The position numbers were made by a program, and so were the translations under genes. A DNA stretch of 64,000 nucleotides, from NCBI RefSeq assembly GCF_035594765.1, contig NC_085844.1, positions 177,770,107-177,834,106 of the forward strand, given 5' to 3'. Position 1 is the first letter of the stretch. Every line of letters begins with the position of its first letter. A model generated the notes under the pieces. That model had not been told where the DNA came from. It searched no databases and saw only the letters and a list, made by a program, of their open reading frames with translations. Of this stretch, positions 113 through 30,122 are shown in pieces. Source of the DNA: Anolis carolinensis (taxonomy: Eukaryota).

Positions 113-245
113 AACAAAAGACAGTATGCATCATGCACTAGCTTAGGCTACTATATTAGAAATGCAAGCCATGATGACCTTTGACTTTCAGAACAGCCAG
201 AACAGCTGGGGACACAATGAAGGAAGCTCAAGTTCTTTGTCAGAA
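113..245 (+). pseudogene. TTC39A: TTC39A pseudo-exon (human exon 3 equivalent)
   Basis: [42 protein letters not shown] vs human [43 protein letters not shown]. TAG at 144-146, 133 nt instead of 132 (+1 frameshift), GTAAG donor at 246. Confidence 0.93.
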
Positions 246-557
246 GTAAGCACTCATTATGACGAAAGCCCCTTATTTGAGAGTTCAAAAGCCTATATTT
301 TATAGGAGTCACTTATTAGAAGTGATATGTCTTCTTTGAGGGCTTTTATATCAACTTAATGGAATGCAAAAAAAAAAAAATCCAGTACTTTTTGAGAAAA
401 GGTGAGACCAAGTTGTGGGAACAAGTGTCTAAGGCTAATCGCTAATCCAGATAATTCTGATGTGATTTAGGATTCAGGACTTTCAATCCATGCCAAAATA
501 GAAAAGAAGGTATGGATATTTAGGAAGATACAAAAATGTTGAATCAGCACCCCAAAT

Positions 558-631
558 GTTCGAACCACCAATCTTTCGGTCAGCAAGTTCAGCAGCTCAG
601 TGGATTAATCCGCTGCACCACGGAGGGCTCC
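558..631 (-). mobile_element. Sauria SINE 5' head fragment
   Basis: Reverse complement GGAGCCCTCCGTGGTGCAGCGGATTAATCC...GGTTCGAAC matches the heads of full copies at 29177 and 55128. Confidence 0.8.
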
Positions 632-632
632 A

Positions 633-668
633 TGCTTGCTTTAGAGTGCTGTTTTTACATTCCTTCAG
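633..668 (+). pseudogene. TTC39A: TTC39A 3' remnant of exon 5 equivalent
   Basis: TGC TTG CTT TAG AGT GCT GTT TTT ACA TTC CTT CAG|gtaata = CLL*SAVFTFLQ vs CLLQRAALTFLQ. TAG at 642-644; a SINE head occupies the place of the 5' half. Confidence 0.8.
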
Positions 669-1844
669 GTAATAGCATTGTTTCTTAAATATGTTATTGT
701 GAATTTAGCCAGAGGAACATAAAGAGTTATTTCCTTTCATTAGGGGATTTGGCAATTTATCTATAGGGAAAGCATACAGATTTTAAGTCATTAAAAAGCA
801 AGTAAAAATATGTATTACAGTATTAGCCATACTGGTAATGCAGAAGAGAAACGATAAACTAATCCAGTTTAAGAGGAGAGACAATGCCTGATGTCTGGCC
901 CTTTAGAGTCAATATTGCCTAATGTTACATATATGAGTGTGAGCGAGCAAGAGCTGAAATTCTCACTGATGTGTTACTTAAACAGTGATGCATACAGCTC
1001 CATCCATTTTCTGCCTTGAATTTTTATTTTATTTTGCATGCATGGATAGCTACTCATAAATTAATCAAGAGATTTCCACCTTTTAGTATCCAGCATTTCT
1101 TAAGTGGGTCTCCTGAACAGTATATTTTTTGTAAACGAAATGTCAACCCAGTTTACTAGTTTTTGCCTTGTCTTATAATATTGCAGAGTCTTTCTTAGGA
1201 TACCTTCACATGGCTCAATTATATGATTTGATCCCACTTTTTTTGCTGTGTGAAAATCTTCTGGAATCCTGGGGGTTATAGTTTGGCTGAGAAGTCCCCT
1301 AACCCCCCCCCAAAAAAAAAAACTAAGGCCCCCTTCCACACAGCTGAACAAAATCCCAGATATTGTGGGATTTTCTGCTTTGATATTTTGGGTTATGTGG
1401 CTGTGTGGAAGGCCCTGAGTCCCCTGTCCCCTAGTATTCCACATTATGCTATCATGACACTTAATCATAGAATCGTAATGGTATAATTGGCTAGTGTAAA
1501 AGGTCTCTTGCTCACAAACCACACATAACAATTACCTAGCCATAAAGCTCCTATTACTTTTGTCTATTTTTAGGGATTCCCCCCAGACCTGCTTTATAAT
1601 GGGCTTTATGTTTGTCACAAAATGGACAAATAATGATATTTTCCGACTCCTGATTGCCGTGCTCTGACTGTTCAGCTGCTGAACCACTTTGTCAGCCTGT
1701 TTGACCCACTTTTTTCACCTTTGGCTGTGAGTAATAGTGGAAGATGCAACTCCTCAAGCAGGAAATGTGTTTCCTGACCTACATGAACCGGAGTGAATGG
1801 TCAGGCACTTCTTCCAGTGTGCATAAGTGTGCAGCTTTTAATAG

Positions 1845-2465
1845 CCAATGCTCCAGAAGACAAGAGCAGAATCCAAAATGATCTCAACAGATTAGAGAGA
1901 TGGGCTAAAACTAACAAAATGAAGTTCATCAGGGACAAATGCAAGATACTCCAGTTAGGCAGAAAAAAGGAAATGCAAAGATACAGAATGGGGGACGCCT
2001 GGCTCGACAGCAGATCATGCAAAAAGTATCTTGGAGTCCTTGTGGACAACAAGTTAAACATGGGCCAACAATGTGATGCGGCAGCTAAAAAAGCCAATGG
2101 GATTTGGCTTGCGTAAATAGGAGTCTAGTGTCTAGATTCAGGGAAGTCATGCTACCTTTCTATTATGCCTTGGTCAGACCACACCTGGAATCACACTGTG
2201 TCCAATTCTGGGCACCGCAGTTGAAGCTGGAATGTATCCAGAGGAGGGTGACTCTAATGATCAAGGGTCTGTAGAATAAGCCATATGAGGAATGGCTTAA
2301 AGAGCTGGGCAAGTTTAGCCTGCAGAAGAGAAGGCTGAGAGGAGACGTGATAGCCATGGATAGATATATAAGGGGAAGTCATATGGAAGAGGGAGCAAGC
2401 TTGTTTTCTGCTGCCCTGGAGACTAGGACGCGGAACAATGGCTTCGAACTACACGAAGGGAGATT
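1845..2465 (+). mobile_element. CR1 LINE ORF2 3' fragment (degraded)
   Basis: [51 protein letters not shown]; overlaps the CR1 copy at 13147-13620. Confidence 0.9.
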
Positions 2466-2714
2466 AGTTTAGTTTAGAACAACAGTTCCCAAGCTTTGGT
2501 CCTTCAAATGTTTTGGACTTCAGCTCCCAGAGTTCCTGATTGTCAATCAATTTGACTGGGATTTCTGAGAATTAAAATCCGGATCAGAGGATCAGAGTTT
2601 GGGGACCACTGATCTAAAATAAAACTGAAGAAAACAAGAAGATAACTGTTCGCTACATCTTCAAAGTAATGTCTGCTTTACCCAGCAATGAATAATAAAT
2701 TGTATCTTCCTTAG

Positions 2715-2779
2715 GATGAAAACATGATTAGTTTTGCTAAAGGCAGCATCAAAATTAGACACAGTTATCAGATATACAG
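2715..2779 (+). pseudogene. TTC39A: TTC39A pseudo-exon (exon 6 equivalent), no disabling lesion
   Basis: ttag|DENMISFAKGSIKIRHSYQIY(R)|gtatgt, 65 nt, vs [22 protein letters not shown]. Confidence 0.93.
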
Positions 2780-3553
2780 GTATGTAGCAATGTAACGGAT
2801 GCTGTCTGGAAGAGGAAAATAATTCTGTTACATTGGACTCTAGGGAATTAATTGTTTCTTATTGTATAACATTTCATACTTCATACTGATTCAAATGAAT
2901 TAGGGCTGTTTTATTTATTTTTACTTTGCTTATATTATTCATAGTCTGCATTTCAGGATAAACTTTCACAAGGCAGCTTAGAGCAACTAGTGAATGTAAT
3001 ATCTGAAACTGTGAAAGTTGTATAAGTTAGTCATTGAAACAGTGATATCTAAAGAATGGAGCCGGTTAAACTGTTGCTAAAAAGCTGAATTGAATAGAAG
3101 TCTAAAAACTGTGTTTTAAAGCCACAAATGAAGGATCCATACAAATCTTGCTGAGGGAGGGAATTCCAAATATGTGGGACTACAACTGAAAGGTCCTTGT
3201 CAAGATACATGTGCCATAAAACTGCTTCTTGACTAACTATGACACTATGAATTTAATAGGATTTTCTTAGGCAAAGAATACTTAGAAGTGTTTTCTCACC
3301 ATTGCCTGCCTCTGAAATGGTGACCATGTATTCTTATGGCAGTCCTCCATCAAGTACTAACCTGGCGCGAACTTGATTAATTTGCAAGATCAGACAGGAC
3401 TTGGTGCCATCAGGGTGTTTTATGTGGTGGTCCACAGTGCATTCAGGAAAGCAATAGTAATTAATTCTTGTTGTGTAGTAAAATTTGTTAAATTATTATT
3501 GCCTTTATATCTGGAATTATATTCTCATTTTTTATGAAATTATTCTTTTATAG

Positions 3554-3653
3554 AGAGCTGGATAGTCTATTACATTTTCCCAACTATGTTAAAGGAGAAA
3601 ACCATGCCCATTTTGAATGTTGTGTAAAGCTGTGGGTCAGAGCATTTAATCTA
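3554..3653 (+). pseudogene. TTC39A: TTC39A pseudo-exon (exon 7 equivalent), donor site dead
   Basis: ELDSLLHFPNYVKGENHAHFECCVKLWVRAFNL, 100 nt, vs [33 protein letters not shown]. Followed by ATATGT instead of GTATGT. Confidence 0.92.
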
Positions 3654-3677
3654 ATATGTCGCACAGTTCCTCTAAAG

Positions 3678-3974
3678 CAGTGGTTCCCAACCTGTGGGCC
3701 GCGAGACCTAAAATAATGTCCGCGAGACATGCAGGAAAAATCAATTCTAGATTATTAAATATGGTTTTCTATGGGTGAGCAGGTGTCAACTATTGGATGA
3801 CATATGTTCTGTACGAGAAACTAGAGCTGATGTGGTCTATCCAATGCAATTTTCTAAATCAGCACCCCAAATAACCAAACCGAATCTAAAGTTGACCAAA
3901 AACTGATTTGTAACCCTTTTGGTACTAATGTAGGAGAGTGGTCCCATGTCAAAAAAAAATGTTGGGAACCACTA
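3678..3974. mobile_element. Non-autonomous hAT element (SPIN-like TIR)
   Basis: TIR CAGTGGTTCCCAAC / GTTGGGAACCACTA; decayed TSD ctctaaag/ctaaag. Confidence 0.75.
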
Positions 3975-4550
3975 CTAAAGAAATAATTTTTAAGACTTTA
4001 ACTGGGGCTATTAGAAACTGAGATCATTTTTTTACACAATTAGTTGAGTGTAGAAATAGCTGCATTGCCTCTTCAATGGAATGGTAATGAGTTACCGTCC
4101 CTACTTCTGCATTCTCCCTCCATCTGTAGATCATTCATACCAGAAATACGGTATGTGGGGTAGATGGATGTGAAGACTCTACAAATTCTGAATTCAGTCA
4201 TTTGACTTATATTGCTTGCACTTTATGGCTGCTATGCAAAGCTATGAGTAACTTTCTTATAACAGTTGGAATGTAAACATCTTCTCTGATGGAAGCTTTG
4301 TAGGCATAAAAGATAGCAACCACTTACTAAAGTCTTGAAACATTGAAGTGTCCATGAACTTGAAAACAGTAATAGGGAACTATGGACCCCCATATATTCA
4401 GCTCTTAATTACCAGCAACAGCAGCTACCACCGTTATGCTCCTAGGTCAAAGAAAATAGTATTTGTACTCCAACAATATTTGGAGGGCAACTGTTTTAGT
4501 CTTTAATTATATTAATAGTAAAAAAAAAATCCCAAAATGCTACCTACTAG

Positions 4551-4866
4551 GTAGCCCCCGGTGGCGCAGCGGCTTAAACTGCTGAGCTGCTAAACTTGCT
4601 GACCAAAAGGTAGGTGGTTTGAATCCGGGGAGCAGGGTGAGCTCCCACTGTTATCCCCAGCTTCTACCAACCTAGTAGTTTGAAAACATGCAAATGTGAG
4701 TAGATCAATAGGTCTAGATCAATACCTTTGGCAGGAAGGTAACAGCGCTCCATGCAGTCATGCCAGCCACATGACCTTGGAATTGTCTGCGGACAACGCT
4801 GGCTCTTCCGCTTAGAAATAGAGATGAGCACCATCTCTATGACTAGAGGAAAACCTTTACCTTTAT
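4551..4866 (+). mobile_element. Sauria SINE
   Basis: tRNA-like head GGTGGCGCAGCGG..GGTTTGAATCC and (ACCTTT)n tail. Confidence 0.88.
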
Positions 4867-6394
4867 CTACTACGTAGCCCAGGAAAATAGAAAACACTCA
4901 TAGTGAATTTCTGCTGCCTCGACATCTTACAATGTATAGATATAGTCTAACATCCAAGTACAATTTTAATCAAGGCCTCCTGTACATATATCTTTCTAAG
5001 GGATTTGGTGCTCTTACAGGAAATGGTTCATCATAAGAAGTGAAAAGTCACAAGAGACATAGCAAATGCTTGTCAGACTTGTTTATAATTAATTCATTTG
5101 TCATTCTTTTCACTTGTGAAAGTTGTCTCTCAAAAGGCCAGTTCTACAGAGACTTTGAGTTACACGACAACATTAAAACTGCAAATACTTGACCTAACAA
5201 TGTGAAGACAGTGAGTGCCTCAGGAAAGAAATGTATGAAACAAAACAACATATGTTTGAAGCTGAAGCCGATCAAGTCTGCAAGATCACCCAGGGTTATA
5301 TTTACCATACTAGAATTACTCAGATATTGTAGCATAAGAAGCTGTTAGCAACTAAAATGCTCAAATATTTTCATTGTATATTAAAGTGTATGTGTAGATC
5401 AAGGAAAGGAATCATGGAGCTCTCAGGATGTTACGTCTTTGATATTTGAACTTCAGCTCTAAAATACTTGGTCGAATTTACTGTTCTTGAAAGAATAAAA
5501 CTAAAACATTGGGATTTCTTTTGTGAATTAAATTATGAACCTATTAGAAAATGCTTTGTAGGATCACAGTATTTTTCAGCTATCTGAGATTTTTGGATGC
5601 ATTCAGGTTTTAAATCTAGACTACCACAGAGATAAAACATGATGAACTATGAGAGTCAGCTGGGGTTTTTTCATTCTTCCCCGGTTAACGTGTAGTGCCT
5701 TCATACTTCAGGTTGGCACCTCTTCTGATTTAGTGTAGAAGCATTTCTCACTGCAATTATTCATAATCGAATACCTCCTCAGTAAACTTCTCTACCCAAC
5801 TTTTAATCCACTCTGATGACCAAAAGTCCAAAACAAGAATGTAGTTCCCAAATCTCATATGCTTGGTGATACGGAAGGATTGTAACCTTGTTACTCTAGC
5901 ACAGCCTTTCTCACCCCTTTTTTTTACATTTTTTACATTGAAGGAACCACTGCAATAATATATATAAATATAAATATATAAATTTTATTTCTATCCTGCC
6001 ACCGAAGGGACTTGAGCCAGCCAACGAAGTGCTGCATATAGATAATACATAAATAATACATAAATCTGAAACGATAAAAACCACAGAATTACAACCACAC
6101 ACATATATAATTACAATGTAAAACATTAAAATTCATAAAATGCAGTCATAGCCAGGTCTTTAGAGAACTGTCACATAAAAATTATTATATCTACTGCTCA
6201 ATTTCTTTTTTAAAAATCATGTCTCAATATCGTGCACAATCCTAAGCAACCTCTTGTGGAATGCTAGATTTGTATCTTCAGAATACATTTTGAGTATTTC
6301 CCTTCCACTATTATTTCTTGTTTTGCCACTGAGTGCTGAGCATGGAAACTACATGCCTTTTAGTAGGATTGCATCATCGTCATCATTGTGCCTG

Positions 6395-6735
6395 ATTCCT
6401 TGTGGCTGAGTATGATTGTCTTTGAAGAGTAGAATCTTGGTGGTAGGTCCGTAAATGACTGTAGGGACCTATTCTGGATCCACATGGTCTTTCACAATGA
6501 GGACTTAGATTTCCAGATAAAAGGCAGTCCTGACAAGGGTTTGCTTGACATGCCTTTCTCTTGGCATGTTTCTCCCTTTCACCCTCTATTTGTGCCTCTT
6601 CAAAATCCATTGCACTGTTGGTAACAGCTGACCTCCAGTTAGAACATTCACATGCTAGGGCTTCCCAGTTCTTGGGTTTTTTTAAAGGTTTGCTTTAAGC
6701 CCTTCTTTAAATCTCTTTTGCTGTCCAATAACATT
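6395..6735 (-). mobile_element. RTE-clade LINE 3' fragment
   Basis: FEEAQIEGEREKHAKRKA..PHCERPCGSRIGPYSHL; same family as 18661-19511. Confidence 0.8.
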
Positions 6736-7064
6736 GCATAGACTGCAGTATTGTATAAAGAGGTGGAAAGAGGAAAATGTGATCAGAGGCCACTGGAATT
6801 ACCTTTGCATGGTAGACATAACAAGAAGAATGTAACTCAGGGTGAAATTGGGTTAAGTAATTCTAATGCTAGTATCACTTCTGTCCTTGGACCCAGGAGT
6901 GGGTGATTCTCCCTTTCCATATCATTTATATAATTGGAGTCTCTGCTGGGAATGAGACATGGAGAGACATGAATTAGCTGTAATTTCACTGATTTCAATC
7001 AATCTTTTTATCTCTGAAGCTCTCTTCTGAGATTTGGAAGACTGGGCATGTATTATTTACTTCA

Positions 7065-7375
7065 TATAGCAGTCCATACTCCATGAAATAATGCCCAACT
7101 GCTCACTGGAGGGAAGGATGTTAGAGACAAAGATGAAGTACTTTGGCCGCATCATGAGAAGACAGGAAAGTTTGGAGAAGGGAATGATACTGGGGAAAAT
7201 TGAAGGGAAAAGGAAAAGGGGCCAACCAAGGGCAAGATGGATGGATGGTATCCTTGAAGTGAATGGCTTGACCTTGAAGGAGATTGGGGTGGCCATGGCC
7301 AACAGGAAGCTCTGGCATGGGCTGGTCCATGAGGTCATGAAGAGTCAAAAATGACTGAACGAATAAACAACAACA
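7065..7375 (+). mobile_element. BovB-type RTE LINE 3' end
   Basis: SLEGRMLETKMKYFGRIMRRQESLEKGMILGKIEGKRKRGQPRARWMDGI...VHEVMKS followed by GACTGAAC..(CAA)n tail. Confidence 0.85.
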
Positions 7376-7403: not shown

Positions 7404-7469
7404 ACTTTATCCATGCTACCAACAAGGATTGTCCAGTTACTAGAGTTTGCTGGATTTTCTGGAAATAAG
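7404..7469 (+). pseudogene. TTC39A: TTC39A pseudo-exon (exon 8 equivalent)
   Basis: tag|[22 protein letters not shown]|gcaagt, 66 nt, vs [22 protein letters not shown]. Donor is GC. Confidence 0.93.
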
Positions 7470-10410
7470 GCAAGTTATTTTGATTTGCAATGTAGATGCT
7501 AAAGACTTATTGTTATTACCATGATTCTTGATGATTTGCAACATACACATAGACACAGTAGTACATAGTTGATGCATGTTTGCTATGCCTCATTTCTTGG
7601 TGGAAACTCTGCCTGGAAAATTGGGGAACTACCTGGAATAGCATGACAAGTGATTCTAGGAACTGCAGGGATGAGAAGGAATTAAAGTTCAGACAGAAAG
7701 CTGGAGTAGATTCAGCACTTTCCTGACATTGGGGCCACTAGCCACCATTGGCTGCCAGACTATTTTCTGTGCACTTCTTTACTGTTATGTTCATAATAGC
7801 CCTTAGACTGCACAATGTTTATTTCCACATTTGCTCACCTATATTATGTAAAAGTGCTTTTCCTTCATACATTGTAAAATTAAAATTTTGTGATTGACTC
7901 TGTTTAGGAATATTATATTTTATCAACTTGTATACTAATAGAATTCAGAGAGGAAAATAGGAAACACTCAGACTACAAAGAAAAATAGAGAGGGTAAGAG
8001 AAAATATAATAGAAGTATGTAAAATTAAGCATGCTATTTGCAATACATCTGGAGGAGCATTATTTCCTCCCCCACAAAGCTAGTCACTCAATGAGGCCAA
8101 ATACTGAGAATAGTGACAAATAAGGGCAGGTATTTTTTTTCACATGGAACAGCTTGGATATGGGATTCACTGTCACAAAATGTAGCTATAGCTACCAACT
8201 TTTGGATGGGTTTTGGAGAAACATTTTGCAAATTCATGGACATTGGGGCCACTGATACCTGCAGGTCAATATAGCTATATATCATATCCAGAATAAGAGG
8301 CAATATGCCTCTGTATTTATTTTTCTTGATGTATCAAAATAAGTGTTTCCAATACTTTTGCGACATTAATTGTTGGCAATGAAGGATGGAGCTACATTAA
8401 AGTCCAGTTTGCAGGTTCTCCATAGGCAACAATGATAATGTTATTTTATACCCTGCCAATCATCTCACCAAAGGGACTCAGGGCAGCATACAATCGGAAC
8501 CAAGCCCAGAACATACAACCAAATATAGCAACTAAAACAATCAAATTAAAACAATTAAAAACACAACAGGGTATACAAACATCATTCAGAGTAAAACAAA
8601 CTCAACAATTAGTGGGCCACTATGTGAACAAAACATTGGTCTGATCCAGCATGGTTCTTCTTTGGTTTTTATTAAGTAACAGTTAAAGTCGGACTACATT
8701 ACTACCCTTAGAGCCAAGCTACTCTAGTAAGCTGCAGCTTCAAGAAGGCGTTTATTGGCTGGTGAGTGGTAGAGAAAGAAAGAATTAGACCTCAGTGGAG
8801 TCCCTTTAATTGACTTTCCTTTAATGACTATTGACATGATAAAGAAGGGCAATTCACATTTACTGTCACATATAATTTGACTCCAGGTGTACTTTGATTC
8901 ATAGGCGTTTCTTTAAACTGACTCAGATCAGATTTTTTTTTTAAACTGACCCCTTTTATCATCTTTATGTATAAAATAAGTAAACATGGCAATTAGGCAG
9001 TTGAAATTTGGAATTTATTCTTGACAGGTTAATTGGATTATAAATTGATGCAGTTTATGTGCATAAGTTGAGGTACTGTTCCACTGAAAAGACCAAATTG
9101 TTCAGTGCTACAAAGTGGCATATTCAAGGTGTAGTCAGATTACTACAGATTGAACATTTGTTTATATTAAGATGTCTTTTTTCAAGCATGATGCTTAAGG
9201 CTGAGATCAATCAATTATGCGGTGTGTCAGTATGAATGTTGGATTCGTTTAATTTGCATCATTATCACATAACAAGGTTAACTCTATGACTTTTATAGAT
9301 TGGAAAATGAATTGAGAGAGCAAGAGACTTGGCTAAAATGATTTACTAACACCAGGGCTGCACCATTAGATGGAGACAACTTCTTCTGCCTATGGGCTAC
9401 GTAAAACTGATGCATTTCCAGTTTTATTTTGCTTTTATTTTGGGTCAGTTTTGAGGTTGCAGGAATGATGAGAAGCCCAATTTCCAAATTTTGTTATGTT
9501 TTTGCTCTGGTCTGAAAGAGGGGGCTGAGGGCTTTGGGAAGGTCTGAACAGCATGAGGACTCACAAAAAGGGCTCTTTCTTCACCTCTGCAGTAAACAGG
9601 AAATGGATTCTTAACTTCCCTGATTCAGTATAGAAACATCATTGAAGATCCTTATTTTACAAAAGCATAATTTACTGTTACCAATAGCTCATTTTGGAAA
9701 TGTCTATGAAATTGTGCAGAAGTAAGGACATGGGATATAATTGTCCTTAACAGGGGCTGCGGCTAGAACCTTAGGAGAACCCTGTTGGCACAGATCAAAT
9801 GGCTATGTACTCAAGCTATCCGTTCCACAAAAGCCAATTACTTGTTTATGGAGATTTCAGGACACGGCTGAAACCATATTTTCTGTCCAACAACTGGCAT
9901 TTCCCTAATCTCCTTTTATACCCATTGATGTTCATGCCATTTTCAAATCTCCTTTTATCTGTTTTGGATCAGCCACTTTTAACTTTATTAGATGATAACC
10001 CCCCCCCCCCCACACACACACACACACACACTCTTTCTGTATAATGTTATGGGAAATTGGTGTGTATGCTGTCCTTTCACTGAGATTACATGTTTGTTAC
10101 AGGAAAATTGCAATGTCTCAGCTCTTTGTGTGATCAAAAAGACACTGCCCTTTCTGTTTGTAAAAGGAATGCATGTAATTGCTCCTGAATTATTTTTCCT
10201 GATACTCTCTTTGCTCATCCAGTGATTTAGAAAAGACATGTCAATTTACAGTGGTGCTGTTATTCCTTGTGTTAGCTGCGTAAACTAACTTGACCGTGTG
10301 GTGCAGATGAGTGTTGTGATGGGAGGGATTAATTTGATTTCACTGAAGTGCAACAAATAAAGTAACCCAAGAATGTCTAATTTATAACTGCTTATCTGAC
10401 TTTGAAGCAG

Positions 10411-10446
10411 GAACATGATTTGCAGCAGATTCAAGAGGGAGCATCA
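10411..10446 (+). pseudogene. TTC39A: TTC39A 5' remnant of exon 9 equivalent
   Basis: cag|EHDLQQIQEGAS vs DYGLLQLEEGAS. Similarity ends abruptly; the rest of this exon and exons 10-12 were not found before exon 13. Confidence 0.72.
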
Positions 10447-11440
10447 ATGAGTTTAAATTGCAATTCACAATTTCAGATGCCTTTTTGTTTTAATCTTCAG
10501 GAAGCACATACTTAATTCTGTTAAATGTGCCAACTCTATGGACTTTTTTCAAAAGAGATCTACATTGAAATAGAATGTTAACTTACATGATTAAAAGCCA
10601 AATCTCCTAAAACATATCCTTAGCCTAAAACATATCCTTTTCCCATCAATACTACTCTCCATATCCAAGCTTTCCAATGAAAAAAAGATGGTCATCTGAG
10701 AGCCAGTATGAAATATTGGTTGGAATGTTGGCCTATGGCGCTGAAGAACGTGGTTTGAATCCAGTGTCAATTCTTGTCATTATCCAACAAAATTTAGCAA
10801 GTCTTTGTTCTTCAAGTTTGACATTGGCATATGGATCACAACGTAATTCTTAACACCATGTAAATTTTGATCTTCTGAAACAAATTTCTTTTTTCCTTTT
10901 TAATTGCATACTGTTTTGAGGAAATATTTATGATTTCACTACATAGGAAATATTGTAGTGAACAAAGGACAGCTGGCAGGAATACAAATGGTTGTAGTCT
11001 TAAGAGTGGATGCCCTTTTCTTCTTGAGGTCAAATGTCTGCTTCTGACTTTATTTTCTTGAAACCTGGCACCAGACAGCTGTTCTGGGATGGAGTCTATC
11101 TTCTGATCTATTGTGATGAAGTTGACCTTTTGGATGCTTGCTTTTTTGTTGAACTATAAATCTGTATGCTAGAAAAAACATATATAATATATAATACTCA
11201 GTTTCTCTTGCCTTCCACAAGGTTGCAATATGCTAGTGAAAGAATGCATTTTAAATTATGTTGAATACACTTATTGTGTTTACTTTCTGTCATTCAAAGC
11301 AGAACCTTGCAGAGATTCTGTAACCATATAAAAAGGTTTTTTCTCTCTCAGATATTTCACTATGCTGACCTCTTGATTGAAGATGACTTATAATATGATT
11401 TAAAGTAAGAATTTTTAATAATGCATTACTTTTACCTTAG

Positions 11441-11533
<93 letters not shown>

Positions 11534-13146: not shown

Positions 13147-13620
13147 AGAATCATAGAATAGTAGAGTTGGAAGAGACCTCATGGGCCATCCAGTCCAACC
13201 CCCTGCCAAGAAGCAGGAAATCTCATTCAAAGCACCTCCAACAGATGGCCATCCAGCCTCTGCTTAAAAGCCTCCAAGGAAGGAGCCTCTACCACGGCCC
13301 GGGGGAGAGAGTTCCACTGTCGAACAGCCCTCACAGTGAGGAAGTTCTTCCTGATGTTCAGGTGGAATCTCCTTTCCTGTAGTTTGAAGCCATTGTTCCG
13401 TGTCCTAGTCTGCAGGGCAGCAGAAAACAAGCTTGCTCCCTCCTCCCTATGACTTCCCTTCACGTATTTGTACATGGCTATCATGTCTCCTCTCAGCCTT
13501 CTCTTCTGCAGGCTAAACATGCCAAGCTCTTTAAGCCGCTCCTCATAGGGCTTGTTCTCCAGACCCTTAATCATTTTAGTCGCCCTCCTCTGGACGCTTT
13601 CCAGCTTGTCAACATCTCCC
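13147..13620 (-). mobile_element. Young 5'-truncated CR1 LINE
   Basis: Open 131-aa ORF2 C-terminus (LESVQRRATKMIKGLENKPYEERLKELGMFSL..RWNSLP..AFKQRLD) and ATTCTATGATTCTA tail. Confidence 0.95.
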
Positions 13621-14100
13621 ATATTTCATCATTGTATTCTTTATGCCAGATAATAAGCATTTAAACTGTTTTTTAGAGGGGGGAGCTGGGGTATTGCCAC
13701 AGTGGGGTTTTGTGGAAGCTCTAGCAGCTGGATTTCAGGAATGTCAGGCAGCCAGATTCAGCCCCAAGGACTGAGGTTTCCACCAAGCTCTACCCCGATT
13801 TCATACAATGTTGCCTTGTAATTTAATCTCAATAAAAGTTTGTCCAAATTTGTATTTTTTGTTGGTGCGTTACTTTCACTGTGTAGAGCAGTTCCCCCTC
13901 AAAAGTCTTCTTTTTCTTATTTAAAGGAAAACAACAGCCAGTTTTTTTCAACTTTTTCTTGCAAGTCTAGGAACAATTAATTTTCTGACAAGGAGACTGC
14001 TGTGTCGTGGGGTGGTCGGTACACAAGCAGAAACCCCAAACTGTCCCAGTTACCCACTTTCAGATGGACACATTTGAACCCAGAGAATTGCGGAACAGGG

Positions 14101-15240
14101 AAACCGGTGGGTGAGGTCATCCGGAGTTTTGGAGTGTAGTGCCATCTCTATGCAGATGACACCCAACTCTACTACTCCTTTCCATTGAATTCTAAGGAAG
14201 CAGCCCAGACCCTAAACCAGTGCCTGGCAGTTGTGACTAACTGGATGAGGGCTAACAAGTTGAAGCTTAATCCAGACAAGACAGAGGCCCTCCTGGTCAG
14301 TCGTGGGACTAATCGGCGTATTGGGTGGCAACCTGTGCTCGATGGGGTTGCACTCCCCCTGAGGGCGCAGGTCCGCAGTTGGGGGTCCTTCTGGACTCAT
14401 CGCTGACGCTTGAGGCTCAGGTGTCGGTGGTGGCCGGGAGGGCCTTTGCACAATTAAGACTTGTGCGCCAGCTGCAACCATACCTTGAGAAGTCTGACTT
14501 GGCCACAGTGGTCCATGCCTTGGTTACATCCAGATTGGATTACTGCAATGCTCTCTACGTGGGGCTGCCCGTGAAGACGGCCCGGAAACTCCAACTGGTT
14601 CAAAAGTCGGCAGCCAGGTTTCTAACTGGAGCTGGCTATAGGGAGCACACAACGCCCCTATTAAAGCAGTTCCACTGGCTGCCAATAAATTGCCGGGCCC
14701 AATTCAAGGTGCAGGTACTGATCTATAAAACCCTTTACGGCTCGGGCCCTGCCTATCTCCGTGATCGCATCTCCCCCTATGAACCGGTGCAGGCCCTGAG
14801 ATCGTCCGGGGAGGCCCTCCTCTTGCTCCCACCACCGTCTCAAGCGCAATTGGTGGGGACGAGGGAGCGGGCCTTCTGTCGTGGCCCCCCGGCTCTGGAA
14901 TGTCCTCCCAAAGGAGATCAGACAAACCCCAACTCTGTCCTGCTTCCGCAAGGACTTGAAAACCTGGTGGTTTCGGCCGACTCATGGCCCTGAAACATGT
15001 TGTATAAAATCTACCTATCCTTACAACAGACCATGTCAGCCCATCTGATTACTGATCCCTGTTTTCTCGATTGCATGTTGTGATTGTAATTTATTGTTTT
15101 TACTGTCTTATGAGTTGTATAGGTTTTATCCTGTTTTAACAATGTGTCTATTATGCTGTTTATGTAATCTATGTTGTTATATTTATGCTTATAAACCGCC
15201 CTGAGTCCCTTCGGGGAGAAAGAGCGTAATATAAATAAAG
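14101..15240 (+). mobile_element. 5'-truncated L2 LINE (RT domain to tail)
   Basis: YADDTQ motif near 14149-14166, WMRANKLKLNPDKTE, VHALVTSRLDYCNALY; frameshifts; tail CCGCCCTGAGTCCCTTCGGGGAGA. Confidence 0.93.
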
Positions 15241-16170: not shown

Positions 16171-16291
16171 GGCTGTGCCTGGTTTCAAACTGTAAATAGC
16201 AGGAAAGTCCTTGCCTACAGAAAAGTTTGCAATTTGGAAATCCCAGTGATACTTCACCTCAGATCCTGTTCTACTTCCTGTGCCTGCTTTG
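16171..16291 (+). pseudogene. TTC39A: TTC39A pseudo-exon (exon 14 equivalent), two stops
   Basis: cag|[38 protein letters not shown]|gtaaga, 121 nt. TAA at 16193-16195, TGA at 16247-16249. Confidence 0.95.
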
Positions 16292-18660: not shown

Positions 18661-19511
18661 CAATTAACATTAATGGTAAGTGTAACATTAGAAAATTTTG
18701 ACTATTTCCACTACCTTGGCAGACACCTCTCCACAAAAGTCAACATGAACACTGAAATACAATACCGCCTGAGCTCTGTGAGTGCAGCATTCTTCTGAAT
18801 GAAGCAGAGAGTGTTTGAGGATCGGGATATCTGGGATATCCGTAAGGATACTAACGTGCTTGTTTATAAAGCTATTGTCCTCCCAACCCTGCTATATGCC
18901 TGTGAAACATGGACCGTCTACAAGCTTCACACTCAACTCCTGAAACGATTCCGCCAGTGTTGCCTCCGAAAAATCTTGCAAATCTCTTGGGAAGACAGGG
19001 GAACAAATGTCAGCATGCTGGAAGAAGCAAAGACCACTAGCATTGAAACGATGCTCCTATGCCATCAACTCCGCTGGACTGGTGACGTTGTCCAAATGCC
19101 TGATCACTGCCTCCCAAAGCAGTTGCTATACTCCCAACTCAAGAACGGGAAACGTAATGGACAGGAAAAGAGATTTAAAGATGGGCTTAAAGCCAATCTT
19201 AAAAACTGTGGCATAGATACTGAGAATTGGGAAGCTCTGGCCCTTCAGCACTCTAACTAGAGGTCAGCTGTGACCAGCAGTGCTGCAGAATTTGAAGAGG
19301 CACAAATGGAAGGTTTAAGGGAGAAACGTACTAAGAGGAAGGTGCGTCAAGCCAACCCTGACCGGGACTACCTTCCACTTGAAAACTGATGTCCTCACTG
19401 CGGAAGAACATATGGATCAAGAATAGGACTCCACAGCCAGCTATGCATCTACTTCCAAGACGCTACACTTGGAGGGCCATCATCCTCGGGCTACGAGGGA
19501 TCGCCTAAGTA
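18661..19511 (+). mobile_element. 5'-truncated RTE-clade LINE flanked by ~80-bp direct repeats
   Basis: VYKAIVLPTLLYACETW..LRKILQISW..QLRWTGDV..LPKQLLYSQL; tail GATCGCCTAAGTAA. Confidence 0.9.
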
Positions 19512-20618: not shown

Positions 20619-20754
20619 CAGGCAGCACCTGTACTTCGGCCCTTGAGGTGTTTTTGGACTACAACTCCCACAATTCCTAACAGCTGGTAGGCTGTTAGGA
20701 ATTGTGGGAGTTGAAGTCCAAAACAACTCAAGGGCCGAAGCTTGCCCGTGCCTG
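20619..20754. mobile_element. Palindromic hAT MITE
   Basis: CAGGCA..TGCCTG ends, internal hairpin, TSD-like acttagcg/acttaatg. Confidence 0.7.
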
Positions 20755-21519: not shown

Positions 21520-21654
21520 CAGTGGTTCTCAACCTATGGGTCCCCAGATGTTTTGGCCTTCAACTCCTGGAAATTCTAACAGCTGGTAAACTGTCTGGGA
21601 TTTCTGGGAGTTGTAGGCCAAAACACCTGGGGACCCACAAGTTGAGAACCACTG
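21520..21654. mobile_element. Palindromic hAT MITE (SPIN-like TIR CAGTGGTTCTCAAC); family copies at 39813-39949, 39969-40106, 46745-46879, 61769-62068
   Basis: TIRs and internal hairpin; sibling copies have 8-bp TSDs (atttaaag, cactaagc, ttctagac/gtctagac). Confidence 0.88.
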
Positions 21655-21660
21655 TTGTAA

Positions 21661-21772
21661 CAGATGATGTATGTCTGGAATGGCTATGCAATGATTGGAA
21701 AGTGTCCTGATCTGACTGAAGGTATTTTGAACACCATAGTAGATACAGAAGCAGCTCTGGAAAAAAGTCCAG
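21661..21772 (+). pseudogene. TTC39A: TTC39A pseudo-exon (exon 15 equivalent), acceptor disrupted by a MITE
   Basis: QMMYVWNGYAMIGKCPDLTEGILNTIVDTEAALEKSP|gtaact, 112 nt, vs [37 protein letters not shown]. Confidence 0.93.
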
Positions 21773-23980
21773 GTAACTCATGTCTAATTTCAGAAGACGC
21801 ATCATTGTACAAGGTGCAAGCCAGTTGGAGAGACTGCAGCTGTCTTGTGGAGTCCAAAGAAGTTAAACCTATTAATCAAATTTCCTTTCTTTAGTCGGTG
21901 ATGAGATTATGCAACAGAGAGCAGGCGATAAAGACTGTAACTGTATTTTGCTGTTCATTTGTTCTCGTCATCCTCCCTCTTTACTACTTGTTTGCATTAT
22001 TTCTGCTAATTCATCACATCTGGGAATATATTTGAAATTTAATTTAAGTTTCGTTTCAGGTGTATTCTTAGTAGTCTGCTTTTCCTGATATAAATCTATC
22101 AACTTCAGTCTTTGTGTGTGTGTTTTTTAATTGTGTCAGAAACAACTTGAGAACATACTGCAAGTCGTTTCTCTTGTGAGAGAATTGGCCATCTCCACAG
22201 ACACTGTCCAGGGGATGACCAGATGTGTTATCATCCTGCTGGGAGGCTTCTCTCATGTCCCCGCAAGCTAGAGCTGACAGACAGGAGCTCACTCTGTCTC
22301 CCGGATTCAAACCAGCAACCTTCAGGTCAGCAACCTAATCTTTAGGTCAGCAATCCAGCTGGCACAAGGGTTTAACCCATTGCGCCACCGCAGCTTCTAG
22401 TCTTTGTGTTGAAAGAGAGTGTCAATTGCTCCAACAGCAGGGCATGAAAGGCAGATATGTGCACAGGATGGAAGGGCAAAATCAAAAGTAATATGTATTT
22501 AGATAAGAAGGTAAACTAGACTGGGCTCATTGGCCTTGTGCAACCTTGAGGATTTCAGTATCCTAACACCGTATCTTCAAACTAACCCAATATGATATGA
22601 AACGTCCTTCTGTTGTCTCTATTTTTCAGATGCTTTTAAAATATGCCAATTCTACTCTTAGTCCTCGGTTTACTTGTCCTTTTCTCTTTCCCAGCAGACT
22701 CATACAAAGCAAACTACTGCAGCCTCTTCTAGATTTTGCCATCTTAACCACACGCTGATGTTGCTGTGCCACATGTGTCCTGGTTTTTAATCTGTGAAAT
22801 GTTGGAGGTTATGCCAAACACACCCCTTAAACAAAAACCTTTAATGCTCCTTGCTCTCTCTAGGAGCACTTTTTCCCCTATTCTCCTCCCTCTTTTTAGA
22901 TCGCAGAAGCCTGTTTGCAAACCTGCAAGTGACTTCCTTATGTCCTTATAATTGCTGTCACAAGCAATTGAAGCAAAGAGGAACCCAGAACTATAAGAGT
23001 GCAGTCGAGCAAGACATAAGAACGTGCCTAGAGCCAAATTAGGTCAGGCTTTAAAATCTGCTGCTCTGCTGCAGTCATCTGGATCCTCTCTGGTAAGCCA
23101 CTCTTCTTACCAGACTATTTTTGGAGCCACCTGTCAGCAATTTCCCCTCGTTTTGCTCTCATGACTCAACACGCTTGATTTTCCTCTCTCTTCTCACATT
23201 CTCCTTCCCAACAATCATTTTTGAAATGTTATTTTGAACAATCTGGGTCAATCAGTACACACTATCCCACCCCACTTTTTAAAAAGCAACTTGGATGTTT
23301 GGTTTTTCTCTTGCATGATGGCATTTGTCTATTGCAATTGGTTTTCTCAGAAGTGCTTCCCCATTGTGTTCTCTCGATTGCCGAGAATCAGTTCTATTCA
23401 TCTTCAAAATCCTCTCTCGGCAGGGAATAAACAGTGGAAATGAGTGTACTGTGGTTGTGATTATGATTGTGTGTGTCACAAACACAATCATATACTCTCG
23501 TCACATTCTTTTGATTCCATTTTTATTTCTCTCCAGTTGTGCTAGGTCTTATCTATTGTATCTAGCCTCTGTGGCATATTTTGAAGATTACTGTGGCTAT
23601 TTTAATATTTCATTAAGTTCTCCTAAGTTACCATAGCCTAATATTTAAATAATCAGAAATTTGGAGTGGCTGCATATCACTTAGTCACACTCACATTTGC
23701 CTAGATTGTGTGTCTTATTTAGACAAGGCTGGATTAAGGTGGTTTCTGTGCTATAGCTGCTTTGAAAACAAGCCCTCCTCTATATGCACATGTTGCAGAA
23801 CCTCCATTGGAGGGCTGGCTTTGCAGAGGGAACTCCTCCTTGGGACCAGGGCCAGGCACTTCCAGGCCTGACGGGAGAGACAGCTCTGAGCATCTCTTCT
23901 GCTTTTGCCCCAGCAACATACACACTGATTCACTCCACAACTGGGAAGCGGAATGGGAATGGTTTGTAAATGTTACCAGC

Positions 23981-24705
23981 CCATTGTGCATGTGGCAGGG
24001 CTCAGGTTGCATTGTAGTAAGTGGTCTGTGGTTTGTTCTTTTCCACTCACATGTCGTGGACTCCACTTTGTAGCCCCATTTCTTAAGATTGGCTCTGCAG
24101 CTCGTGGTCCCAGAGCACAGTCTGTTCAGTGCCTTCCAACTCGCCCGATCTTCTGTGTGGCTAGGAGGAAGTTTCTTATCCGGCATCAGCCATGGATTGA
24201 GGTTCCAGGTTTTAACCTGCCACTTTTGGACTCTTGCATGTTGAGGTGTTCCTGCAACTATCTGTGTAGATCTTAAAAAGCTGTTTCTTGATTTAAGTCA
24301 TTGGCATGCTGACTGATATCCACAGAGGATGGACCAGAGATGTCGATGCCTTGGTCCTTTCATTACTGGCTGCTACTTCCCGACGGATATCAGGTGGTGC
24401 AATACTGGCTAAACAGTATAGTTTCTCCAGTGCCGTAGGGTATAGACATCATGTGAAAATGGGCATGTCTCATTAAGAGCCACATCCACTGTTTTAATGT
24501 GGTGAGATGTATTCCACACTGGGGATGCGTATTCAGCAGCAACATGCATAATGGAGAACCTTCTCACAGTGACACAAGAGGCACTCCAAGTGGCCAGCTT
24601 ATAGTCAAAGGAAATCTAGCATAATGCCAAGTTTTTAACTTCGTTTGTATTTTTTTAATTAAAAAAACCAACATTATAACTGTACCCTCAATTTGCTTCT
24701 GACAT

Positions 24706-24738
<33 letters not shown>

Positions 24739-24740
24739 AT
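23981..24740. mobile_element. Vingi (I/Ingi-group) LINE 3' fragment with 5' inversion
   Basis: Minus segment encodes AAEYASPVW..SWKALNRLCSG; plus segment continues the ORF end to GCTTCTGACATG(AAAT)n. Confidence 0.8.
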
Positions 24741-25236
24741 ACCACTCCATGGGCAGATCTATAGGTCCCTCTGCCCAGGATAATTTCTTCATTTAAATAG
24801 AATCATAGTACTAGAAAATACAGCCAGCATGATGTAGCAGTGCTTTGGGTGTTAGACTAGGGCCCTCGAGAGCAAGGTTCGGATCCACATTTCACCTTGA
24901 GCAATTGACACTTTCTCAGGCTGAAAAGAAGATAGTGGCAACACATCCCCTTGAACAAATTTTTCCAAGAAAACCGTGATAAGTTCACCTTAAGGTCAAC
25001 ATATGTTGGACACACTCTGAAGGCACACAACGAGAAAAGTGTGAAGGGAAAGTAGGTTGTAGATAGCAGCTCATGGATCTTGCCACTTTTGTTCCCATTG
25101 TACCACTGAATTCAACCTTGCATTGAGATAATAAGGGAATTGTGAACAGAATATGTTTTTCAGCACCTTTCCTCTCTCTTCTGTTCAAAGTAAGCACATC
25201 TTATTATGCTATACTGCTTCTTGTTTGCCTTGTCAG

Positions 25237-25434
25237 CAACAGATATGTATGTATGTATGACCAGTGTGTGATAAGGCTGCTGAAAGGTTTATGCCTGAAA
25301 TACCTTGGCAAGATTTCAGAGACAGAGGACCATTTTGTTGTCGAAGGCTTTCATGGCTGGGATCACAGGGTTGTATGTTTTCCAGGCTGTATGGCCATGT
25401 TCTAGAAGGACCATTCTACTTACGTTCACTTCGA
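25237..25434 (+). pseudogene. TTC39A: TTC39A pseudo-exon (exon 16 equivalent) with frameshift and TE insertion
   Basis: DQCVIRLLKGLCLKYLGKISETEDHF[insert]..TYVHF|gtaagt. Length 198 = 115 + 2 (TATG-repeat slip) + 81 (70-nt insert plus 11-nt duplication). Confidence 0.92.
25337..25406. mobile_element. Penelope-like terminal fragment inserted in TTC39A exon 16
   Basis: GTTGTCGAAGGCTTTCATGGC..GGCTGTATGGCCATGTTCTAGA resembles 61120-61165; 11-bp duplication aggaccatttt/aggaccattct. Confidence 0.75.
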
Positions 25435-25949
25435 GTAAGTGTCTGCTCCTGAAAAACGCAGTATTAGCATGCTAATGATCAGTGTTAATACCAATTGTGT
25501 TTACACTGTGTGATCCCTCGACTGATGGACATCAGTAATTGTACGTAAATGTTATAACCTATTCATCACTTGATGGGCAATCTTCAGGTAAGGAGCCTTT
25601 TTGTACTTAACTAGGCTCCTTCTAGGACAGCAAACATGTTACTAGGGCCATACCTGAAGCCTTGCAAGCTTGATAGAGTCCACAGTTCTGCTAACGTATC
25701 CTTCAAAATCCTGGGATCATCTCCACCCCCTGATGAAGTGGCAGCTTTTGCAGAAGGAGCCCATAATAACTGCATTGAATTACTGAGGAAATACAACTCC
25801 ATGCTATGTAAATTGATGGGAGGAAGATGTATTCATATCTTTAAGGCTTATTCAACATAACTTTTATGGTTGAATGTACATGTTGTATAGATTATGAAAA
25901 GAAAACAGCTGTGGACATAGATGTAAGCCTATATCATTAGTCTCTCTCT

Positions 25950-26224
25950 TACTCTTAGGTGATCCCTCATAGTTCGAGGATGATGGTCCTCCATTTCTTG
26001 GAAGACGCCTGTGCGTGATTTTTTTTTAATGTGTGGAGGTCGGTGCACGGCCGGTCAACACACAGTCTTCACAAATTGAGGTCCCAGCAGTGGTGTGATT
26101 AACACGAGTGGCTTCTAAGTCTGTTGCAGCCTTCTTCCGCCTTCACAGCCGTTGTAACATGTACTATGTTATCCTCCGCCTGCTCCGCCGTTGAGGTCTT
26201 TGGGTCTTCAGATTGTTCTTGGTC
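25950..26224 (-). mobile_element. Non-coding retroposon with RTE-type tail
   Basis: Minus tail GGAGGACCATCATCCTCGAACTATGAGGGATCACCTAAG matches the RTE tail at 19470-19511; body is not RTE coding sequence. Confidence 0.6.
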
Positions 26225-27124
26225 TGGGGGATAAAAGCCTCGTAACTTGAAGGTTGGGTTGCTGACCTGAAAGCTGCCAGGTTCGAATCCCACCCAGGGA
26301 GAGTGCGGATGAGCTCCCTCTATCAGCTCCAGCTCCATGCGGGGACATGAGAGAAGCCTCCTACAAGGATGGTAAAACATCAAAACATCCGGGCGTCCCC
26401 TGGGCAACGTCCTTGCAGACGGCCAATTCACTCACTCCAGAAGCAACTCCGGTTGCTCCTGACACGAAAAAAACCCAAAAAAAACAAAAAACAGTAGCAC
26501 TGGTGTGTATCACTGCATCTCAGTACATGTCCACGTGTTCATTAAAGTTGCAGCTTTGACAATTGAGAGTGTAGAAAGAAGTGTAAAGGTTGTATCTCTT
26601 AAATGTTTACTAAATGGCATCGTGCTCCCCAGTACTTATCCTCTTGTTGAAAGGAGACATAACAATCCCACATGTCATCTAACTGATGAGCACTTGTCAG
26701 CAGATGCCATTTACCACTGCCTATCATAGAAAATAAGATTTAAATCAGAGTGCCTTCCTACATGTTTGAATAACTCGTGTCTAATGTCAGAAGATGCATC
26801 ATTATACAGGGTGCAATCCAGTTGGAGAGATTGCAGTTGTCTTGTGGAGTCCAAAGAAGTTGGAAAACCATAAGTTGACAAGCAATTTGAAGGCACACAC
26901 AAGACAAGAAGAAGTAAATCAAAGGCTTCTCCACTAATCCCTCCCCCAAAGGCATCATCCAGCTAGTTCAGGTCTGCAACATGACTCCCCTGGGTGTTGT
27001 GTTCAAGTGGAGAGTCTGGATCCTGAGTGATGGGCTACAGAATGTGTTTTGTGCAGGAATGTAGACTGTTCAACAAACTAGGATACATTATGTGTAGTAT
27101 GAATTAGTTCTTGTCAATCTCTAA

Positions 27125-27317
<193 letters not shown>

Positions 27318-27486
27318 GTAAACCTTTTGATGCGTCCACTTGTTTTTGCTGATTAGATGTGAAGTAGTGGTACTAACATATGCAAGCACACTGCCTAGGT
27401 TATGAGAGCAGACTCAGTTCAAATGAACCACCCTGAGTCTCCTTTGGGGTTGAGAAAGGCGATACAGTATATAAATACTGTAAATA

Positions 27487-27831
27487 CAGTAGAGTCTCGC
27501 TTATCCAACCTTCGCTTATCCAACATTCTGGATTATCCAACGCAGTTTGCCTTTTAGTAGTCAATGTTTTTGTAGTCAATGTTTTCAATACATTGCGATA
27601 TTTTGGTGCTAAATTCATAAATTCAGTAATTGCTACGTAACGTTACCGTGTATTTAACTGCTTTTTCTGTCGATTTGTTTTAAAACATGATGTTTTTGGT
27701 GCTTAATTTGTAAAACCATAACATAATTTGACGTTTAATAGGCATTTCTTTGATCCCTCCTTATTATACAACATTTTTGCTTATCCAACATTCTGCTGGC
27801 CCGTTTATGTTGGATAAGTGAGACTCTATTG
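27487..27831. mobile_element. Tc1/mariner (pogo-like) MITE nested in an L2 tail; second copy at 37227-37547
   Basis: TA flanks; TIR CAGTAGAGTCTCGCTTATCCAAC / GTTGGATAAGTGAGACTCTATTG. Confidence 0.85.
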
Positions 27832-27971
27832 TAAATAAATAAATAAGCCCTTTCAGACATGCTTTCACTTGAGTTAGAGCTCCCACCTTCCCTTCACTTT
27901 GTTCAATGATGGTTTGGGTTTGTAGTCACCCACAGTCTCCAGCTTTGCATGAGAACCAGGTGTGAAAAGTA

Positions 27972-28365
27972 CAGGGCGTTTCAAAAAGATGGACTCAATT
28001 TGAAAACACTATATTTCTGCAGTCACTGCCTATGAATGAAACCCTTGAAAGAGTGGAGCATAGTTTTAAATTATTACAGCTAGATGCCTCTCCCAGCCCA
28101 CAAAAAGCCCCTGACCTCAAACCATTCACAAGATAGCAATGTCAGCTATTGTAAAAATGGAGATTAGACTGACTAAAACAGATCAGCATACAACTAAATC
28201 TTTTCCAATAATATCAGTAGAGTGGTTGGTAAAATCTCATAACTCATTAAACCACTTGTAACTTTTTGTGCAATTATAACATGTTGCCATCATTAAACAG
28301 ACTGTTTAATGATGGCAACATGTTATAATTGCACGAAATTGACTCCATCATTTTGAAATACATGA
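27972..28365. mobile_element. Decayed Tc1/mariner-like element containing a perfect palindrome
   Basis: TA-CAGGGCGTTTCAAAAAGATGGACTCAATTT vs AAATTGACTCCATCATTTTGAAATAC. Confidence 0.6.
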
Positions 28366-28422
28366 GCTGCATGGACCAAATGCTATGTGATGTTTTCAGG
28401 CCAAAATTCTGCATACCCTGTT

Positions 28423-28571
28423 ATAGAATCATAGAATCCTAGAGTTGGAAGAGACCTCATGGGCCATCCAGTCCAACCCCTGCCAAGAAGCATGAAATCA
28501 CATTCAAAGCACCCCCGACAGATGGCCACCCAGCCTCTGCTTAAAAGCCTCCAAATAAGGCTTTTAAGCAG
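28423..28571 (-). mobile_element. CR1 3' tail fragment with 5' fold-back
   Basis: Matches 13147-13285; 14-bp hairpin at the truncation point. Confidence 0.88.
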
Positions 28572-29176
28572 TCCTCTCACTTAAGGAACATCTAATCCAA
28601 TTCATTTATGTTTCATATCCATCTTATATATATAGCCTGAAAGTAATTTTATAGAATATTTTAAAAAATAATCAGAAAGTGCATGAAATGAAGTTTGTGT
28701 ACCTATGAACATCAGAAAGCAAATACGCCACTATCTTAGCCACCCATGTAGACAATTTTGGATTTTTGTGTATTTCAAATGTGAGATTTCCCGGTAAGGG
28801 TTGCTCAACCTGTACAATTAAGACATAAGTCTTTGACAGGGGAAACAAGAGCCAATACTAAGAGATAGGTTAATCTCAATGGAAAGACATTCAACAAAGT
28901 TGTCACAGAAGAGAAGGCTCATCACTGTAACCAAACCAGTCTTATTATGCCCTGACCAGTGTAAGCAGAGCCACATATACATTCTGTAAAAACCAGAGCC
29001 ACCTATACTTGTATTTAGAAAAATAAGGAATAAAATATGAGAAAACTGCCTAAAATTCAGCCTAGCAGCAGCCAGTCAAAATAAGCAATACTGGACTAGA
29101 TGGAATTTAGATAGTTATCAGTAGAAGTCAGCATCATATTTTGTTAGGACAACTTTGTGTTCAGTAATACTACTTG

Positions 29177-29506
29177 GAGGCCTCCTGTGGCGCAGTGTGT
29201 TAAAGCGCTGAGCTGCTAAACTTGCTGACCAAAATGTCACAAGTTCGAATCCCGGGAGCGGAATGAGCGCCCACTGTTAGCCCCAGCTTCTGCCAACCTA
29301 GCAGTTCGAAAACATGCAAATGTGAGATCAATAGGTACTGCTTCGGTGGGAAGGTAACAGTGCTCCATGCAGTCATGCTGGCCACATGACCTTGGAAGTG
29401 TCTACGGACAACGCCGGCTCTTCAGCTTAAAAATGGAGATGCGCACCAACCCCCAGAGTCGGACACGACTGGACTTAACGTCAAGGGAAACCTTTACCCT
29501 TTACCT
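29177..29506 (+). mobile_element. Full-length Sauria SINE
   Basis: Head to (ACCTTT) tail; 12-bp TSD taatactacttg. Confidence 0.93.
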
Positions 29507-30001
29507 TAATACTACTTGAGGGTTTTTTTTAAATTTCTGCTTTCATTTGAGGCTGTTTTTATAAATGGGGAGTTTTAAAGTTTGTTAGCAATATACAATT
29601 ACCAAACTCAGTGGGACTGAGTTCTGAGTAAATATGCTTAGGATCACATTGTTGCACTATAATATTTTTTCCTATATCTATTTACTTGGGAATAAGGTCT
29701 AATCAGCATACTTCATTTTGAGAAGGGAGGTGTAAGGCTGCATGTTGAAATCTGATATGGACTTGTTATTTCTTAAGGAAGGATTAAATCAAAAGAATAC
29801 TTCTTCACTGATAACTGCTGAGTATTGAAGCTACAGACAGAAAAACCAGGTTGTATTATTCTACTGAGTTTGGATTTTACAGGAAACAACAAAAAATGAG
29901 GGGGGGGAGGCTCCTTTCCCACACATCAAAAATTCTTCAGGTAAGCACAGCAATATGAAGGCAACAAAAACGTGCTTTAGATCCTATCTATTTTGTTTTA
30001 G

Positions 30002-30122
30002 ACAAAATTATATGAATTACTCAATGGAAACAAGAACACATTTCAGAATTCAAGATGCTGTGCACCAAGCCAGATCTTCCCCAACAAATTGTATTCATTG
30101 AGTAGAAACTGTATTTTTGTAA
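30002..30122 (+). pseudogene. TTC39A: TTC39A terminal pseudo-exon (exon 18 equivalent)
   Basis: tag|QNYMNYSMETRTHFRIQDAVHQARSSPTNCIH*VETVFL* vs [40 protein letters not shown]. TGA at 30099, probable ancestral TAA at 30120. Confidence 0.92.

Follow-up and report, generated by a model that had tools for sequence, protein, structure and literature searches.

TTC39A is understood to be conserved from fish to mammals, and in mammals it lies convergent with RNF11. Its paralogue TTC39B (T39) has been reported to regulate LXR stability and lipid metabolism. Unitary pseudogenes, such as GULO in primates, arise by the lineage-specific loss of a single-copy gene in place. Here we examined 64 kb of the genome of the lizard Anolis carolinensis (contig NC_085844.1; this whole stretch is hereafter the window), which is AT-rich vertebrate DNA of ~40% G+C with many interspersed repeats and a 139-base run of N at 31753-31891. 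On the forward strand, from the window start to 30.1 kb, we found the remnants of TTC39-family exons in order. We consider it likely that this locus is the decayed TTC39A of this lizard, at its ancestral site and tail to tail with RNF11, and we regard the TTC39A pseudogene as real and old, and as probably unitary. The initial annotation had described a wrecked TTC39 gene lying in order beside RNF11, which we confirmed from the sequence.

Compared with vertebrate TTC39A, the locus shares the Pfam family (PF10300, Iml2/TTC39), the exon order, the RNF11 neighbour and the convergent orientation. It differs in that stops, frameshifts and splice-site losses have destroyed the reading frame, a third of the domain is missing from its centre and transposons have entered, so that it cannot encode the protein. 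The resemblance to unitary pseudogenes such as GULO is likewise close, since the gene is dead in its syntenic position, introns are kept, many independent disabling mutations are present and neighbours are intact; unlike in such cases, no trait is known to accompany the loss of lizard TTC39A.

We then asked how firmly the exon series belongs to the TTC39 family. Translation of the forward strand gave 11 firm remnants, or 12 with a doubtful scrap, in agreement with the 12 of the initial annotation. The exons were located by eye and with short motifs of human TTC39A, which the preserved stretches appear to match closely; this likeness is not counted as evidence. An exon-by-exon Pfam search matched PF10300 with four exon pieces, Ec, Ee, Ef and Eh, and these matches were colinear on one strand, with profile positions 110-133, 180-202, 338-368 and 412-452 falling at window positions 2715, 7404, 11441 and 21664. 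Two of them passed the curated family cut-off of 22.2 bits on their own (Ec, 26.1 bits, E = 4.5e-6; Ee, 26.3 bits, E = 3.9e-6), and two scored below it (Eh, 19.9 bits, E = 3.5e-4; the second half of Ef, 13.3 bits). As a control, none of 55 stop-free forward-strand segments of at least 24 residues from 7.5-11.35 kb matched PF10300. Four colinear matches against 0/55 control segments argue that the series is not due to chance. Splice phases were also consistent between adjacent exons, save where a lesion is claimed. All searches were made exon by exon rather than with a joined spliced model; the exons at 25.2, 30.0 and 21.7 kb, used as queries for homologues, gave no match within the searched length range, and neither PDB nor the ESM Atlas gave a match. 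The locus is a member of the Iml2/TTC39 family by descent and not a working one. The remnants and the gap among them are as follows.

111-245, forward strand: Ea (called exon 3 by the initial annotation), with acceptor AG at 109-110, donor GT at 246-247, an in-frame TAG at 144-146 and a +1 change of frame between 195 and 205.
633-668, forward strand: Eb, cut down to its final 36 nt, which hold TAG at 642-644, with donor GT at 669-670.
2715-2779, forward strand: Ec, open, both splice sites intact, PF10300 positions 110-133.
3554-3653, forward strand: Ed, whose donor position 3654-55 reads AT, not GT.
7404-7469, forward strand: Ee, open, acceptor AG present, donor GC at 7470-7471 (AAG|GCAAGT), PF10300 positions 180-202.
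7472-11351, forward strand: stretch without the central exons, where ~135 profile positions (203-337, about four exons) are expected and only the doubtful scrap was seen.
~8729-8760, forward strand: the doubtful scrap, a 7-residue remnant from a motif scan.
11352-11404 and 11441-11532, forward strand: Ef, with TAA at 11391-93, 36 extra bases between its halves and a different frame in each; the second half matches PF10300 positions 338-368.
16171-16291, forward strand: Eg, acceptor AG (16169-70) and donor GT (16292-93) intact, with stops TAA at 16193-95 and TGA at 16247-49.
21664-21772, forward strand: Eh, open, AG at 21662-63 and GT at 21773-74, PF10300 positions 412-452.
25237-25342, forward strand: Ei, conserved frame from 25238, with a (TATG)4 microsatellite and no clear GT donor.
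27197-27317, forward strand: Ej, lacking an acceptor AG, with a 1-nt loss near 27268-27272 and donor GT at 27318-19.
30002-30101, forward strand: Ek, the last exon, open, acceptor AG at 30000-01, ending at TGA 30099-30101.

Four other candidates were dropped. An apparent exon at 3492-3553 ('IIIAFISG...') was set aside after the true exon at 2715-2779 was found, an apparent match at 612-632 falls within a copy of a short interspersed nuclear element (SINE), and Pfam lent no support to weak look-alikes at 7775 and 8095. In a search of representative proteins with 7404-7499 (Ee, 32 residues), the only matches were P0001 and P0002 (E = 7e-4 and 1e-3), short open reading frames (ORFs) each made of one exon with translated intron on both sides; these may be genomic fragments from public assemblies, mammalian or even human, and we did not use them for comparison. 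A search of the 64-kb window against Rfam gave no match.

We next considered the lesions. Premature stops had been proposed at 144, 642, 16193, 16247 and 30099, and the first four read TAG, TAG, TAA and TGA at these coordinates; each lies inside an exon remnant whose ends carry splice sites and whose residues are family-like, in an unchanged frame, before and after the stop. A further in-frame TAA (11391-93), missed by the initial annotation, lies in Ef, which is itself split by extra bases (36-46). The fifth stop did not hold up as a lesion. The TGA at 30099 closes the last exon and is most simply the natural terminator, because the acceptor of Ek is intact, as is the donor before it (GT 27318-19), and the two match in phase; TGA 30099-30101 is probably the stop codon of the gene itself, displaced by a few codons at most.

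Frameshifts had been described earlier in the equivalents of exons 3, 16 and 17. Changes of frame were confirmed in Ea and in the 27.2-kb exon (Ej), and the 25.2-kb exon (Ei) is out of phase with the exon before it. Between 195 and 205 the family-like residues of Ea leave frame 0 and continue in frame 1. The frame of Ei starts 1 nt past its acceptor AG (25235-36), where the phase-1 end of the preceding exon Eh calls for 2 nt, and Ej has lost a single base near 27268-27272. Of the two splice-site changes described earlier, the GT>AT donor at 3654 is present as claimed (3654-55 reads AT). The change from AG to AA at the acceptor of Ej (27200-27201) stands in part: the AA is there, and the ancestral acceptor may instead have lain a few bases upstream. 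Whichever position was ancestral, no AG acceptor for Ej occurs in 27176-27206. The GC donor of Ee, which sits in a strong context, could either go back to an ancestral GC-AG intron or count as one more lesion. Where human TTC39A presumably has glycines, Ed shows four radical substitutions, to Cys, Cys, Trp and Arg. The report that several exons are missing also agrees with our search, in which about four central exons (profile positions 203-337) left no remnant and none of the 55 segments matched. No continuous ORF for the whole PF10300 domain exists at the locus, which has 5 premature stops, at least 3 frame changes and no remnant of profile positions 203-337. The tally is at least 5 premature stops, at least 3-4 frameshifts, 2 destroyed splice sites and the loss of about four central exons.

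Since introns and most splice sites are kept, the gene appears to have died in place rather than to be a retrocopy; a processed (retro-)pseudogene was rejected, as the remnants extend across 30 kb and most of the exon ends still show a recognisable splice site. We envisage that the gene died in place and would then have gathered stops, frameshifts, splice-site losses and transposon insertions at or near its exons. The roughly four central exons now missing held the middle of the Iml2/TTC39 domain, and a functional protein cannot be made from what is left. Any transcript would be expected to terminate early and to be degraded.

RNF11 supplies the positional evidence. Two of its exons lie beyond the remnant on the opposite strand:

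35417-38470, reverse strand: RNF11 exons 3 and 2, open, matching the RNF11 conserved motifs searched.

Exon 2 lies at 38.4 kb and exon 3 at 35.4-35.6 kb on the reverse strand, so that RNF11 exons 2-3 are convergent (tail to tail) with the TTC39 remnant and begin 5.3 kb past its last exon. RNF11 had been called flawless; exons 2 and 3 are intact, and exon 1 is not in the window. It had further been claimed that the locus is the true ortholog of TTC39A, lost in this lineage. What the sequence bears out is a dead TTC39-family gene with introns, tail to tail with RNF11 and carrying lesions of many kinds; orthology to TTC39A itself is suggested by this synteny together with the apparent likeness of the preserved motifs to the human protein. 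As in a unitary pseudogene, the gene has kept its introns and its place while carrying several disabling lesions of independent origin.

To assay whether the lesions are present in independent data, we looked for positions 1-3800 in sequencing runs. This stretch was present in runs of seven studies, all filed under a single coded organism label, and contigs were compared for the DNA runs X5, X8 and X14 (three studies) and for X17, a run guessed to be RNA (none of the runs is recorded as RNA). DNA contigs covered the Ea region as 1-440, 1-380, or 1-149 plus 126-588 (X14, 1-588), the Eb region as 586-1322 (X5, X8) or 580-1162 (X14), and the Ec/Ed region as 2510-3699 (X8, X14) or, in X5, as the overlapping contigs 2611-3265 and 3236-3699. 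Compared with the window, the contigs of X5, X8 and X14 showed no base differences, and insertions or deletions only at 368, 1229, 1302 and 3133, all outside exons. The TAG at 144, the shift at ~200, the TAG at 642 and the AT donor at 3654 were thus present in 3 independent DNA data sets. Being common to the three runs, these lesions are not assembly or sequencing errors, which strengthens the initial view that sequencing error is unlikely. Over 1-3800, agreement among three DNA runs of three studies indicates that the lesions are real and suggests that they are fixed in the sampled individuals.

Several points weigh against reading the locus as the lost TTC39A of this lizard. The assignment to the A paralogue is drawn from synteny and motif likeness rather than from a tree, and the view is confined to the 64-kb window, so that an intact TTC39A could lie elsewhere. 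Assembled contigs drop rare variants, and the reads cover the first 3.8 kb only. Three of the exons (Ec, Ee and Eh) retain an open frame and good splice sites. Finally, X17 looks like thin DNA, so that its lack of exon-exon joints and of any spliced transcript is a weak test and leaves room for expression.

Among the alternatives, the one that survives best is that the copy is dead and not unitary, with a working TTC39A elsewhere in the genome (translocated, duplicated before decay, or on an unplaced scaffold). No observation favours this directly, though the confinement of our view to one window leaves room for such a copy. Set against this, the dead copy holds the ancestral syntenic position by RNF11, and a copy so placed is normally the only one of its gene; its heavy decay fits a long time without need for the gene. 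We therefore judge a working copy elsewhere unlikely, and infer that the genome holds no second TTC39A.

Somewhat less probable still is that the locus remains active, giving a non-coding RNA or a short protein from the exons that remain open. The usable splice sites of Ec, Ee and Eh would allow for this. Yet broken exons lie between these open ones and prevent the splicing of any long frame, and the depth of X17 was zero in the bins that contain Ea, Eb and Ec, with introns thinly covered, a pattern that resembles low-coverage DNA.

PF10300 spans the whole family and does not separate paralogues, which would also accommodate a remnant of TTC39B, TTC39C or an older family member. The tail-to-tail arrangement with RNF11 is that of mammalian TTC39A and speaks against such an origin, which we hold to be very improbable. 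That the lesions are assembly errors can be set aside almost entirely, as DNA runs from three separate studies agree with the window at 4 lesions in 1-3800, and the lesions are for the most part substitutions or large events rather than homopolymer slips.

We sought to estimate the age of the loss. The 359 remnant codons contain five stops; as 4.2% of single substitutions create one, this corresponds to ~0.11 substitutions per site (95% range 0.04-0.26) after the release from constraint. If neutral rates in lizards are taken as 0.8-2.4e-9 per site per year, the point estimates range from 46 to 137 million years with very wide error, pointing to inactivation tens of millions of years ago. The loss may well predate the species. 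Heavy decay (~0.11 per site, four exons gone, several transposon insertions) would also allow it to be older than the species and clade-wide; that it is much older and common to a large squamate clade (all anoles, Iguania or beyond) is a tentative suggestion, which we hold to be somewhat less probable than its opposite. If it were true, such lizards would be a natural knockout of TTC39A.

The event is of a familiar type, one more lineage-specific gene loss, and it is apparently unreported so far. Searches joining TTC39A with Anolis, with gene loss or with reptile terms returned no report of a loss in the literature searched; the terms 'TTC39A' and 'gene loss' together led only to an unrelated mouse-liver study. 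A chicken transcriptome paper reportedly lists TTC39A. There is almost no functional literature on the gene, and no functional study of it was apparent among the fifteen best-ranked of 164 papers that mention it. A natural loss in a model lizard would mean that TTC39A is dispensable in at least one amniote lineage, and would offer a comparison point for the role of TTC39A and for compensation by TTC39B and TTC39C. These two paralogues presumably cover whatever function was lost. TTC39B belongs to the same protein family and is hence a possible back-up; it differs in being a separate locus, and the role in lipid metabolism is that of TTC39B, so a tie between the loss of TTC39A and lipid metabolism would be speculation. 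Because TTC39A has two paralogues and no phenotype is known for its loss, the importance of the finding is modest, and would be higher if a large squamate clade shares the loss. For annotation, automated predictions at this locus may come out as 'low quality' or truncated proteins.

The initial annotation had also noted transposable elements on three exons. This proved roughly right, with a SINE at Eb, a miniature inverted-repeat transposable element (MITE) at Eh and a high-copy repeat near Ed. The first two of these elements, and the copies related to the second, are as follows.

542-632, reverse strand: head fragment of a tRNA-type SINE, which abuts and truncates Eb; by self-BLAST, 6-8 other copies in the window end at the position equivalent to 632.
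21521-21655, strand not applicable: palindromic MITE of 135 bp, lying between the polypyrimidine tract and the acceptor of Eh and ending 6 nt (21656-21661) before the AG.
21521-21655, 46747-46885, 39806-39949, 39971-40119, 61960-62074 and 20646-20728: MITE-like copies.

Read depth reached ~8e5 in the bin 509-635, which holds the SINE head copy. The MITE at 21521-21655 is 91% identical to the copy at 46747-46885 and belongs to a palindromic MITE-like family of ~135 bp with terminal inverted repeats CAGTGGTTCTCAACC...GGTTGAGAACCACTG, present in at least 6 copies in the 64 kb that are 77-92% alike. The high-copy repeat starts ~15 nt past the broken donor of Ed (3654). Elsewhere in the TTC39A introns, ORFs of up to 222 aa at 1787-2470, 13227-13622, 14185-14993 and 18799-19260 appear by eye to be decayed retrotransposon fragments (reverse transcriptase of a long interspersed nuclear element), and read depth exceeded 1e6 at 1.8-2.5 kb.

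On the RNF11 side of the window, we searched the reverse strand over 38.5-64 kb for exon 1, which holds the N-terminal coding part, and did not find it; the first intron is therefore longer than ~25 kb or the exon lies past the window end. A G+C-rich block at 57.4-58.4 kb was considered as the RNF11 promoter island and rejected, as it is a minisatellite with a 26-bp unit. This G+C-rich repeat (57446-58393; 36.5 copies, 87% matches) lies probably in RNF11 intron 1 or upstream of RNF11, yields spurious forward-strand ORFs of 387-395 aa and mimics a CpG island in composition plots. Right after it comes a 140-bp tandem repeat at 58805-59331 (3.8 copies, 90% matches).

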